A stretch of DNA of 64,000 nucleotides, taken from the NCBI GenBank assembly GCA_002269645.1, contig NIVC01000482.1, positions 1 through 64,000 on the forward strand, given 5' to 3'. A program made the position numbers and the translations under genes. The notes under the pieces were generated by a model, which was given only the letters and a program-made list of their open reading frames with translations, searched no databases and had not been told where the DNA came from. Numbering within the stretch: position 1 is the stretch's first letter; each line of letters opens with the position of its first letter. Shown here piece after piece: positions 25,749 to 28,700 of this stretch. The DNA is from Macrostomum lignano. Lineage: Eukaryota.

Positions 25749-28700
25749 CTGAATGGGTATATTGTCCATTAGTTAGTTAGTTAGTTAGTTAGTCAGTTAG
25801 TTAGTCAGTTAGTTAGTTAGTTAGTTAGTTAGTCAGTTAGTTAGTTAGTTAGTTAGTTACGAGTAGTTAGTTAGTTAGTTAGTGAGTTAGTTAGTTAGTT
25901 AGTGAGTTAGTTAGTTAGTTAGTTAGTTAGTTAGTTAGTTAGTTAGTTAGTTAGTTAGTTAGTCAGTTAGTTAGTTAGTTAGTTAGTTAGTTAGTTAGTT
26001 AGTTAGTTAGTTAGTTAGTTAGTTAGTTAGTTAGTTAGTTAGTTAGTTAGTTAGTCCGTTAGTTAGTTAGTTAGTTAGTTACTTAGTTAGTTAGTTACTT
26101 AGTTAGTCAGTTAGTTAGTCAGTTAGTTAGTTAGTTAGTTAGTTAGTCAGTTAGTTAGTTAGTTAGTTAGTTACGAGTAGTTAGTTAGTTAGTTAGTGAG
26201 TTAGTTAGTTAGTTAGTGAGTCAGTTAGTTAGTTAGTTAGTCAGTTAGTTAGTTAGTTAGTTAGTTAGTTAGTTAGTTAGTTAGTTAGTTAGTTAGTTAG
26301 TCAGTTAGTTAGTTAGTTAGTTAGTTAGTTAGTTAGTTAGTTAGTTAGTTAGTTAGTTAGTTAGTTAGTTAGTTAGTTAGTTAGTCAGTTAGTTAGTTAG
26401 TTAGTTAGTTAGTCAGTTAGTTAGTCAGTTAGTTAGTCAGTTAGTTAGTTAGTTAGTCAGTTAGTTAGTTAGTTACGAGTAGTTAGTTAGTTAGTTAGTG
26501 AGTTAGTCAGTTAGTTAGTTAGTTAGTTAGTTAGTTAGTTAGTTAGTTAGTTAGTTAGTTAGTTAGTTAGTTAGTTAGTTAGTTAGTTAGTTAGTTAGTT
26601 AGTCCGTTAGTTAGTTAGTTAGTTAGTTAGTTAGTTAGTTAGTCAGTTAGTTAGTTAGTTAGTTAGTTAGTTAGTTAGTTAGTTAGTTAGTTAGTTAGTT
26701 AGTTAGTTAGTGAGTTAGTTAGTCAGTTAGTTAGTTAGTTAGTTAGTTAGTTAGTTAGTTAGTTAGTTAGTTAGTTAGTTAGTTACTTTCAACCCAACAA
26801 GCAAAGCAAACTTGACAGACCAGCAGGCGCAGCAGCGGCAGGCGGTGCGGGCAGCTGCTGTATAGGCTGAGCAGGTAGCGGGTCTTCTCCAGCCCGATCG
26901 TGTTCATGCTGATGTCGCAGTCCATCGAGTCGTCGCTCTCAACACTCAGCTGACAGCGGATGAGCGGCACCATGCGGTTCTCAGCCAGCAGCTCCACCTT
27001 GTTGGTGGCCACCCTGTCGAGAGCGGGCGACACCGCATTGCGCAGCCAGTGCCGCTGAAGCTCCGCCGCTGACAGGCCGGACAGCTCCGGCTGCTGAGCT
27101 TCCCTCGTCGCTGTCACGCACAAATCGACATCGGAGCTGACCGCGTCACAAAGGAAGACGGAGGCCGAGCCGTAGACGGCGACGTCCAGCAACCGGTGGT
27201 TTCCGTCGCTTCTCTTCACAGTGGCGTCGATAGCCGAGCGGATGAGGGCGGCGGCGGTGTCGGCCCGGCCGACGGCTTCGCTCAGCGCCGGCAGCGACTC
27301 GCGCAGGCTGGCGATCGCCGACATGCCAACGTCGAGTTGAAGATTCCGCTCGGCACTGGGAGCGGCAGCTGATTTGGTCAGCAGGTCGCCGATGTCGCAA
27401 AGAATGTCGGCGACAATCCAGGGGAAGCTGAGGCCGAGAGGGCGTCGACGGCGAGCCTCGGCCGAGTCCTCCAGGTCGACATCGTAGCTGACGTCGTCGG
27501 AAGCCTCGACGTCGCGGGCGTGCCGGGCGGCCACGAAGTACCAGGCGGCCGCCTTGGCCCGCTGCCGGTCCGCGGCGTCCTGGCAGCCGCTGCCGCCTCC
27601 GCCGCTGTACAACTCCGGGTCGGATTCGAACTCGCGACGGTACCTGAGCAGAGGATGCCGCAGAATTGGGAATTGTAGTACAGCGGATATTATATAAAAC
27701 ATACTGATTGTATTGCCATCGATTCATGAAACTTTTGAGTTAAGGTTTATTTATCTTAAAGCGCTTTAACTCTATTCTACTAGCAGTAGACATATAGAAA
27801 GTTACATGTATAAAAATTAATAAATAATAAATTTTATTGACAAGTCTACTAATAGCGGAAATACGAGATTCTAGGGAAGTGGGAAAGAGGGGGAGAGGGA
27901 AAGAGGGGAAAAGGGGGAGAGGGGGAGAGGGGGAGAGGGGAAGAGGGGGAGAGGGGAGAGGGGGAGAGGGGGAGAGGGAAGAGGGGGGAGGGGGAGAGGG
28001 GGAGAGGGGAAGAGGGGGAGAGGGAAAGAATGGAAGAGGGGAACAGGGGAAGAAGAGGAAGAGAGGAAGAAGGGAAGAAGGGAAGAGGGGAAGTGAGCAG
28101 ATGAGGCAGAGCCGAGGTGACAAGATTCAAGCCAAGCTCAGGACTTGCCTGGCAAACAGGGCATCCCGCGCCTCTCGCAGGCGCCTCTGCGCAGAGCCCA
28201 GGTCTGAGCGCAGAGTGGAGTGCCATCTCATGCTCCTGGCCAGGGCCAGCTCCCTCTCGCTGGCCAGGCCCCACTGGCCCAGCAGGGCCCGAACATCCAT
28301 CTGGTAGCGGGCCAGCTCGATTCGAGCTTTCGAGGCGAATCTCTCCCAGCCGGGCCAGGAGAGAATCGGGTTGTTCGCAGAGTCAGTCTCGGTGCCTGTT
28401 GGCTGCGCCACCGCCTGCTCAAGGAGGTCCCAGTCCAGGGCGTAGGTGAGGCAGCGCCGGTACAGCTGGCCCAGCAGCTTCTCAGATTTATAAGTCTTTT
28501 TGGCCGGCTTCTCCATGAAGTCTGGGTAGCCTTCATCCAGCACTTTCTCCAGGGCTTTCTTTGGAACCTGGTAGGTGGAAGAGAGCCGCGTTTCAGTGCA
28601 TAACCCACAGAACACCCCAGTGCAAAACCCACAGAACGACCCAGTGCATAACCCACAGAACACCCCAGTGCATAACTCAACAGAACACCCCAGTGCATAA

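Follow-up and report, generated by a model that had tools for sequence, protein, structure and literature searches.

Organisation of the locus

The window analysed here, meaning the whole stretch of DNA under study, comprises positions 1 to 64,000 of the forward strand of contig NIVC01000482.1 of the flatworm Macrostomum lignano (GenBank assembly GCA_002269645.1). It carries a gene that occupies about 36 kb of the minus strand, consists of at least 21 exons and is predicted to encode, in this order, a Cys-rich N-terminus, a DExH helicase, an RdRP (RNA-dependent RNA polymerase) with a DLDGD motif, a nucleotidyltransferase (NTase) and a conserved C-terminal domain (Table 1). The NTase, the catalytic palm of which shares an exon with the end of the RdRP, is the main subject of this analysis.

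The gene was traced by a tblastn search with a 3058-aa protein of Macrostomum lignano (P0060, UniRef A0A1I8H5L0), which produced 21 colinear minus-strand high-scoring segment pairs (HSPs) extending from 58651 to 22444; no stops were found inside the exons of these HSPs. P0060 shares a 90% cluster with the best match of the window, P0002 (PAA71720.1), which is 48% identical, and these comparisons make the gene in the window either an orthologue or a paralogue of a Macrostomum protein that had been predicted before. The exon boundaries that were refined are the two flanking the NTase.

The exon with the NTase motifs begins within the RdRP. The C-terminal tail of the RdRP and the NTase palm form one uninterrupted frame within this single exon, and an LSF[AP]W motif is found upstream of the NTase in the members of the family described below. 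The shared exon, together with the colinearity of the gene with full-length orthologues, makes the two domains, as predicted from the sequence, parts of the same polypeptide. Taken on its own, the exon matches the Pfam family PF22600 (MTPAP-like central palm; E 5.5e-7) with 30.2 bits; since this score exceeds the curated cut-off of 27, the match of the NTase motifs is, by the profile statistics, more than a chance resemblance. A first-pass annotation, made from the sequence alone, had placed an NTase at 26821-27200, directly downstream of an RdRP, on the basis of YGS, SDVDL and DCDISMN motifs. All three motifs lie where it put them, on the minus strand, and the adjacency proved to be even closer than it had stated, with the RdRP tail inside the same exon. 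It recognised the RdRP and the NTase and overlooked the upstream helicase, the C-terminal domain and the existence of a widespread family.

The palm is separated from the second, central lobe of the NTase by a phase 0 intron of 1,072 bp, which consists almost wholly of a (TTAG)n microsatellite with 253 copies of the 4-bp period. Left unspliced, the frame of the palm exon runs on into this array. The donor reads CTG/GTCTGT, with the last exon base at 26821, the very position at which the first-pass annotation began the domain, and the acceptor reads cattcag/GTCGAC, with the first exon base at 25748; across the spliced junction PLLRLL is followed by the segment with the WAR helix. This splice is supported by the tblastn match of the Macrostomum orthologue, which begins exactly at 25748. 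The second NTase exon ends at the donor CAG/GTGCGA at position 24726. An L..WA helix typical of Cid1-type enzymes had also been reported for the interval 26821-27200; the W-A-[KR] helix of these enzymes is real, but it lies outside that interval and follows the palm only after splicing.

The remaining domains were recognised as follows. For the helicase, motifs I, II and VI were read from the window, and the best PDB matches of the helicase of a Hydra homologue were ancestral Dicer, DCL1, Dicer-2, MDA5, LGP2 and RIG-I, so that the motifs in the window and the PDB matches of the Hydra protein jointly identify a Dicer/RIG-I-like superfamily 2 helicase. A cellular RdRP is indicated by matches to PF05183 in eight exon ORFs (open reading frames), covering profile positions 1-581, and by the DxDGD catalytic loop. 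No Pfam match was obtained for the Cys-rich N-terminus (MQCGNQNCC...CRVVCRGCQ), which is conserved with M. lignano; it may be a zinc-binding, RNA-end-sensing module. One homologue, P0003, gave weak, sub-threshold matches to Yippee/Mis18 (E 0.0014) and to the zinc-binding fold of SelR. The C-terminal region, about 450-500 residues long, is kept from the flatworm to dinoflagellates (residues 2097-2566 in P0008 and 2254-2737 in P0020) and is marked by the family motifs SRYFMEGS, FG.FYL.D..LP, ERPL.W.HAT and FCELS; a Pfam search with this region of two homologues found no family.

Table 1. Features of the window and the evidence on which they are based
Feature	Positions	Strand	Motifs and details	Evidence
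Helicase-RdRP-NTase gene	58651 to 22393	minus		
First coding exon with Cys-rich segment	58289..58651	minus	putative ATG 58649-58651; MQCGNQNCC...CRGC	tblastn of P0060 residues 10-126
Dicer/RIG-I-type DExH helicase exons	40813..57862	minus	motif I MPTGSGKT 57659-57682; motif II DECHH 56825-56839; motif VI QSRGRAR 40972-40992; ~13-kb intron 41092-54037 splitting the helicase C-terminal domain	Pfam DEAD/ResIII/Helicase_C; colinear tblastn HSPs
RdRP N-terminal region and catalytic domain PF05183, about 10 exons	28157..37223	minus	catalytic DLDGDQ 29504-29521	Pfam; tblastn colinearity
ORF of the exon with the NTase motifs	26779..27702	minus		
RdRP C-terminal tail, start of the NTase-palm exon	27400..27640	minus	AAAWYFVA 27529-27552; further RdRP-tail stretch 27400-27432	ORF translation; family motif; Hydra RDR2 alignment
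NTase N-terminal helix and Pol-beta palm	26821..27399	minus	YGSAS 27160-27174; SSDVDL 27121-27138 (SDVDL 27121-27135); DCDISMN 26902-26922 (CDISMN, with the third Asp, 26902-26919); invariant G..K stretch (GLEKT) 26881-26895	PF22600; invariant columns; AlphaFold strands
Intron between NTase palm and central lobe	25749..26820	minus	(TTAG)n 25769-26785	tandem repeat; GT donor/AG acceptor
NTase second (central/PAP-associated-like) lobe	25113..25748	minus	WAR helix 25719-25748; TAEFYAL 25614-25634; LGARILRFF 25386-25412; YRWPIP with invariant W 25335-25352; FH..RL 25113-25136	family alignment; PDB profile alignments; Foldseek alignments of about 360-400 columns
Conserved C-terminal extension, several exons	22393..25112	minus	CRYFMDG 24921-24941; VGQFYLLN 24066-24089; LNWVHAT 22888-22908; stop 22393-22395	family conservation; tblastn HSPs
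Other intron arrays, 4-bp periods	34616-35540; 29601-29885		(TGTC)n; (GAGT)n	
Other intron arrays, longer periods	24161-24684; 28594-29198; 32650-33119; 33418-33932		16-mer; 24-mer; 20-mer; 22-mer	
Intronless 457-aa ORF, rhodopsin-family receptor	17396-18769	minus	DRF, NPVVY	Pfam 7tm_1, E 4.7e-37
Open frame in the 13-kb intron	50251-50966	minus	'YADD'-like stretch	
Low-GC segment	58001-64000		GC 29-32%	

Relationships of the nucleotidyltransferase domain

With the spliced 400-aa domain as query, 1.84 billion representative proteins were searched exhaustively; this yielded 56 relatives, 26 of which were aligned and used as a family profile (A1). When compared with the PDB, this profile matched solved non-canonical poly(A) polymerases (ncPAPs) and terminal uridylyltransferases (TUTases) with E-values from 1e-12 to 1e-8, including CutA (5.7e-12), GLD-2 (1.9e-11) and Cid1 (1e-8), as well as Tailor, TbTUT4, mtPAP, TUT4/7, URT1 and Trf4. 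The alignments begin at the N-terminal helix and reach as far as the FF motif in the second lobe. Solved structures were reached only with the family profile, a phmmer search of the PDB with the spliced 616-aa region having given no matches at E<=10. Among the 26 aligned family members, PF22600 was detected in all and PF01909 in 8, while the second lobe is recognisable solely by its fold and an LG..L..FF motif.

An AlphaFold2 model built from the alignment of relatives reached a predicted local distance difference test (pLDDT) score of 84.3 and a predicted template modelling (TM) score of 0.83, with palm strands at residues 66-71, 86-92 and 152-159 of the 400-aa query; it superseded a single-sequence model, which was unusable at a pLDDT of 40. 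In a Foldseek comparison of this model with the PDB, the best 46 matches were all ncPAPs or TUTases, among them CutA, Cid1, GLD-2, TUT7, mtPAP, TUT1, RET1, TbTUT4 and Tailor, with E-values from 6e-7, TM-scores of 0.45-0.55 and 320-430 aligned columns. The model, the Foldseek matches and the profiles agree in a two-lobed catalytic module with the palm inserted into a helical central domain, as in solved ncPAPs, and the motifs that characterise ncPAPs and terminal nucleotidyltransferases (TENTs), namely hG[GS], [DE]h[DE]h and a third acidic residue on a later strand, are all present. The segment 26821-27200 on the minus strand is the palm of a divergent ncPAP/TENT ribonucleotidyl transferase of the Pol-beta superfamily, of the Cid1/GLD-2 type. 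The first-pass annotation had named the AlphaFold and Foldseek comparison as the means by which a Pol-beta-like fold could be refuted, and the fold withstood it.

Distribution of the protein family

The members of the family that carry species names come from distant eukaryotic groups: Hydra vulgaris (LOC105846402, annotated as an 'uncharacterized protein'), the acoel Convolutriloba macropyga, the dinoflagellates Prorocentrum cordatum, Effrenium voratum and Polarella glacialis, and the streptophyte alga Mesotaenium (eukprot Mesen1). They are accompanied by many unnamed metagenomic and transcriptomic proteins, and the database names of family members are either 'uncharacterized protein' or 'RNA-directed RNA polymerase'. 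In three long relatives (P0003, the Hydra protein P0008 and P0020), Pfam recognised DEAD/ResIII, Helicase_C, RdRP and PF22600.

Of the 55 hits in which the NTase was matched, 23 have 900 or more residues upstream of it; in every one of these 23 an RdRP ends 150-210 residues before the NTase, and 16 of them have the helicase too. A further 11 hits are shorter and begin within the RdRP, and the 21 hits without an RdRP are N-terminally short fragments. A C-terminal region follows the NTase in most relatives. When the Hydra homologue was aligned with Arabidopsis RDR2 (residues 359-1122 of 1133), the alignment ended at residue 1749, which is also the first residue of the NTase match. In these data, the NTase clade is found solely within RdRP proteins.

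Could the fusion be spurious, the NTase exons belonging to a neighbouring gene or to a decaying pseudogene, and the fusion in the relatives arising as an artefact of gene prediction? The introns are indeed large and filled with repeats, many of the database relatives are fragmentary, and the gene model presented here was derived from genomic sequence and protein matches. However, the RdRP tail and the palm lie in one uninterrupted exon frame, the exon HSPs are stop-free and colinear with the 3058-aa orthologue, and none of the three enzymes has lost its active-site motifs. Independent predictions from Hydra (RefSeq), dinoflagellates, the acoel and the alga, moreover, show this order and spacing again. 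We consider a spurious fusion to be highly improbable and treat the helicase, RdRP and NTase as domains of one protein.

An additional homologue search with the window exon retrieved a single 211-aa fragment, P0001, which is 51-57% identical. It is encoded at positions 238-873 of a 942-bp Logan contig (L001, SRR31628403) and has the same junction between the RdRP tail and the NTase (AAAWY...SFPWVVADLL); its divergence past the palm presumably reflects an intron placed differently from that in the window. The same search found nothing with alignment A1 and one close relative with the Hydra NTase and C-terminus.

Introns and surroundings of the gene

Nearly every intron of the gene is filled by its own long and fairly pure tandem array, with periods of 4-35 bp and up to about 250 copies. 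Since several of these arrays stay open in frame, mechanical lists of ORFs run exons into repeats. Such a repeat-filled intron structure is unusual. An open frame with a 'YADD'-like stretch, reminiscent of a non-LTR (long terminal repeat) reverse transcriptase, is found within the 13-kb intron; Pfam gave no confirmation of a reverse transcriptase at 50251-50856 on the minus strand, and the frame may be a fragment of a decayed retroelement.

About 3.6 kb downstream of the stop of the gene lies the intronless ORF for a rhodopsin-family G-protein-coupled receptor (GPCR), which speaks for a metazoan source of the window. The possibility that the gene is bacterial or viral was rejected on account of the GT-AG introns, the animal-type context with its GPCR neighbour and the eukaryotic orthologues. 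Immediately upstream of the first exon the GC content falls sharply, to the values given in Table 1, compared with 41-59% over most of the remaining window, the coding exons being GC-rich.

Active site and proposed function

Residues are numbered here according to the 400-aa query, and conservation was assessed over an alignment of 42 sequences with a mean identity of about 30%. Nine residues, G72, S73, S84, D85, D87, D157, G164, K167 and W323, are invariant in all 42 sequences from animals, dinoflagellates and algae; they include the G-S pair, the DxD motif and the third Asp. Such invariance points strongly to selection on the active site.

The nucleoside triphosphate (NTP) contacts made in Cid1 by S90, K193, K197, S211, N171 and Y212 have been described (PMC3479196). 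Cid1 S90 corresponds to S73, the metal-binding D101 and D103 to D85 and D87, and D160 to D157, all of which are kept; K197 is retained as an Arg (R193, Arg in 38 of the 42 sequences), and S211 probably has its equivalent in T/S227. The DP...H/N stretch involved in nucleotide recognition is replaced by an invariant W323-P324 loop, after which column 331 holds His in 13 of the 42 sequences and Val in the window copy. In our reading, the metal and phosphate chemistry would be preserved and the nucleotide-selecting part remodelled, and it is quite likely that the NTase is catalytically active. The description 'catalytically intact' given in the first-pass annotation stands for the invariant G-S, DxD and third Asp, but not for several of the Cid1-type NTP contacts, which are replaced.

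On balance, we favour the interpretation that the protein is an active ncPAP-type NTase fused with a helicase-RdRP and tailing RNA in cis, and regard it as moderately probable. A number of observations weigh against it. No biochemical or expression data were found for the gene or for any member of the family. The PAP-associated signature PF03828 was detected in none of the 26 family members at E<=0.01. The TM-scores of the Foldseek matches are moderate, with root-mean-square deviations of 8-10 A, although these values would fit differences in the orientation of the two lobes and a 29-residue segment (residues 242-270) modelled at a pLDDT below 50. In the pocket, Cid1 K193, the first of the triphosphate-binding Lys residues, is replaced by V/T/I189, the stacking Y212 is probably represented by A/G228, with loss of the aromatic ring, and the ribose- and base-reading N171 corresponds either to T/A168 in an ungapped alignment or to the invariant K167 when a CutA-style gap is introduced by HMMER. 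The residues were mapped onto Cid1 by sequence alignment and not by the coordinates of the model. The window copy itself departs from the family in having Arg at G196 (Gly in 36 of the 42 sequences) and Leu at H350 (His in 33 of the 42).

Both of the latter replacements, located on the minus strand at 25719-25748 (G196R) and about 25260-25275 (H350L), are lineage-specific and lie outside the catalytic triad, and the His is absent from the M. lignano protein as well. As regards N171, no Asn occupies its position under either alignment, column 167 being Lys in 42 of the 42 sequences and column 168 Thr in 23 and Ala in 14. The assignment of K167 as the certain counterpart of N171 was withdrawn, since the ungapped alignment puts Thr168 there; that comparison with Cid1 has 7 identities in 19 positions and agrees with the published numbering.

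The Asn contact was present in every uridyltransferase structure known in 2012 (PMC3479196). Neither the full set of Cid1 NTP contacts nor the TUTase-specific combination of the Asn with a His or acidic/water network was found in the family. The TUTase/ncPAP label proposed in the first-pass annotation is borne out by the Cid1/GLD-2-type fold and profiles as far as ncPAP is concerned, but its TUTase half is not supported, given the loss of the pyrimidine-sensing Asn, of the first Lys that binds the triphosphate and probably of the Tyr that stacks. Since the family has other residues where Cid1 reads the ribose and the base, the added nucleotide is not predictable, and the name that the alignments justify is 'ncPAP-like NTase' without predictable specificity; they do not support 'TUTase'.

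The same replacements, together with the missing PF03828, could be taken to mean that the Pol-beta fold and the triad were kept for another purpose, either as a structural or RNA-binding module or for different chemistry, such as a synthesis of oligonucleotides or signals of the OAS/cGAS kind, triggered by double-stranded RNA (dsRNA) made by the RdRP. The helicase, being of the RIG-I/Dicer type, which senses dsRNA, would suit the latter role, and cGAS/DncV-like nucleotidyltransferases (CD-NTases) and OAS1 do appear in the Foldseek list, although only at E-values of about 1e-2. We consider both roles improbable. The profile matches at 1e-12 to 1e-8 are to ncPAPs, with no OAS or cGAS and a single CD-NTase-type entry (7x4f) at E 0.37, the 46 best structural matches are likewise all ncPAPs, and in an inactive scaffold one would not expect G-S, DxD and the third Asp to persist in 42 of 42 sequences across kingdoms.

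If the NTase is an active tailing enzyme, the three catalytic domains could act in sequence on one RNA. The helicase would translocate single-stranded template RNA or hand it over, the NTase would extend the template's 3' end by a short non-templated tail, and the tailed 3' end would let the RdRP on the same chain engage it and initiate. This particular mode, tailing of the template in cis, is put forward tentatively, as a plausible mechanism falling somewhat short of an even chance; it is the mode described for the uridyltransferase subunit of the Tetrahymena RNA-dependent RNA polymerase complex (RDRC) and has analogues in Cid12 of S. pombe and poly(UG) (pUG) tailing in C. elegans. The first-pass annotation had already suggested that tailing might prime or license the RdRP; this idea, which is still an inference, agrees with the known RdRP-NTase complexes.

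The evidence for an active, fused ncPAP-like domain would serve equally well for an NTase that tails the product of the RdRP, the ends of dsRNA or small RNAs, for instance to shape the ends for Dicer, as a decay mark or in termination. The sequence is silent on which RNA end is used, and the order helicase-RdRP-NTase does not discriminate between template and product. A precedent is offered by HESO1, whose uridylation marks small RNAs for degradation, as cited in PMC4066745. In contrast, for the one RdRP-NTase complex considered here that has been dissected biochemically, the title of Talsky and Collins 2010, as it is cited in PMC4066745, has the transferase acting on the template. Tailing of the product appears rather unlikely to us.

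Implications

In fission yeast, ciliates and nematodes, silencing that relies on an RdRP also needs a nucleotidyltransferase, and often a helicase, to work with it; how tailing is coupled to copying is debated, and reconstitution of the complexes is difficult. The present gene puts the RDRC principle into a single polypeptide, with an NTase from a dedicated, atypical clade. A natural fusion of this kind is 'Rosetta-stone' evidence for a direct and old coupling of tailing and copying, and it offers a single protein on which structure and enzymology could be studied. The literature searched contained no description of an RdRP-NTase fusion or of this NTase domain, and a prior description is possible.

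The altered pocket suggests, as far as its residues can be read from alignments, a tail chemistry that is not predicted by the current rules for TUTases and PAPs. In its furthest extension, which we regard as speculative and somewhat doubtful, the protein would be an ancient, previously undescribed single-polypeptide 'RDRC', with an NTase clade confined to RdRPs, a remodelled pocket and an unusual self-licensing tail, retained in flatworms, acoels, cnidarians, dinoflagellates and streptophyte algae. If this were true, one enzyme would have coupled the marking of the template mechanistically to its copying from early eukaryotes onwards.

The role of animal RdRPs outside nematodes is an open question (PMC6396948; PMC12768352), and Macrostomum and Hydra are tractable animals in which it could be addressed. 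The helicase-RdRPs of Hydra, and perhaps of Dictyostelium, oomycetes and Nematostella, have so far been presented as proteins of two domains, and an unrecognised third catalytic domain would alter the reading of existing knockouts.

Comparison with known systems

With Cid1, GLD-2, CutA, TUT4/7 and Tailor, the NTase shares the two-lobed Pol-beta fold, the G-S pair, the DxD motif and the third Asp. Other features in common with Cid1-type modules are the W-A-[KR] helix, a Ser or Thr at the position of S211 and a second lobe that opens with LG..L..FF. Unlike Cid1-type enzymes, the family described here has no Asn at N171, no Lys at K193 and probably no aromatic residue at Y212, and it has WP in place of DP; the invariance of G164, K167 and W323 is specific to its NTase clade.

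Proteins that combine a helicase with an RdRP have been reported in Dictyostelium (RrpA-C), peronosporomycete oomycetes, Hydra and Nematostella, where they form the RDR-gamma group (Bollmann et al. 2016, PMC4791657). The work on Dictyostelium speaks of 'both functional domains' (PMC3950715), and a survey of animal RdRPs makes no mention of helicase or NTase domains (PMC6396948). The RDR-gamma proteins have the same N-terminal DEAD/DExH helicase and Helicase_C followed by the RdRP, and the Hydra protein P0008 belongs to the family described here. It is by description that the two are set apart, since the accounts of RDR-gamma list the helicase, Helicase_C and RdRP only.

In C. elegans, pUG tails are linked to the recruitment of RdRPs. 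The poly(UG) polymerase of this nematode is RDE-3/MUT-2 (bioRxiv 10.1101/422972). Its likeness to the present system, to which the first-pass annotation had already pointed, is one of concept, a non-templated tail added by a ribonucleotidyltransferase marking RNAs for copying by an RdRP, and RDE-3 is a separate protein.

The closest parallel in composition is provided by the RDRC systems, in which, as here, a Cid1-like NTase is physically tied to a cellular RdRP, which in S. pombe is joined by a helicase as well. The helicase of the S. pombe RDRC is Hrr1. Each Tetrahymena RDRC contains Rdr1 and a nucleotidyltransferase, either Rdn1 or Rdn2 (PMC8694037), while in Paramecium Rdr occurs with Cid1/Cid2 and in S. 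pombe Rdp1 with Cid12 (PMC4066745). RDRC-type systems need the catalytic Asp triad of their NTase (PMC8694037; PMC4066745). In these complexes, which are assembled to amplify small RNAs, the enzymes are separate subunits, and no orthology of the NTase or helicase with those described here is implied. In the Macrostomum gene, in contrast, the association is covalent, being encoded in one frame of one gene and recurring as RdRP plus NTase in all 23 informative relatives, so that a single polypeptide unites the activities, with a spacing of 150-210 residues between RdRP and NTase and an extra C-terminal domain.

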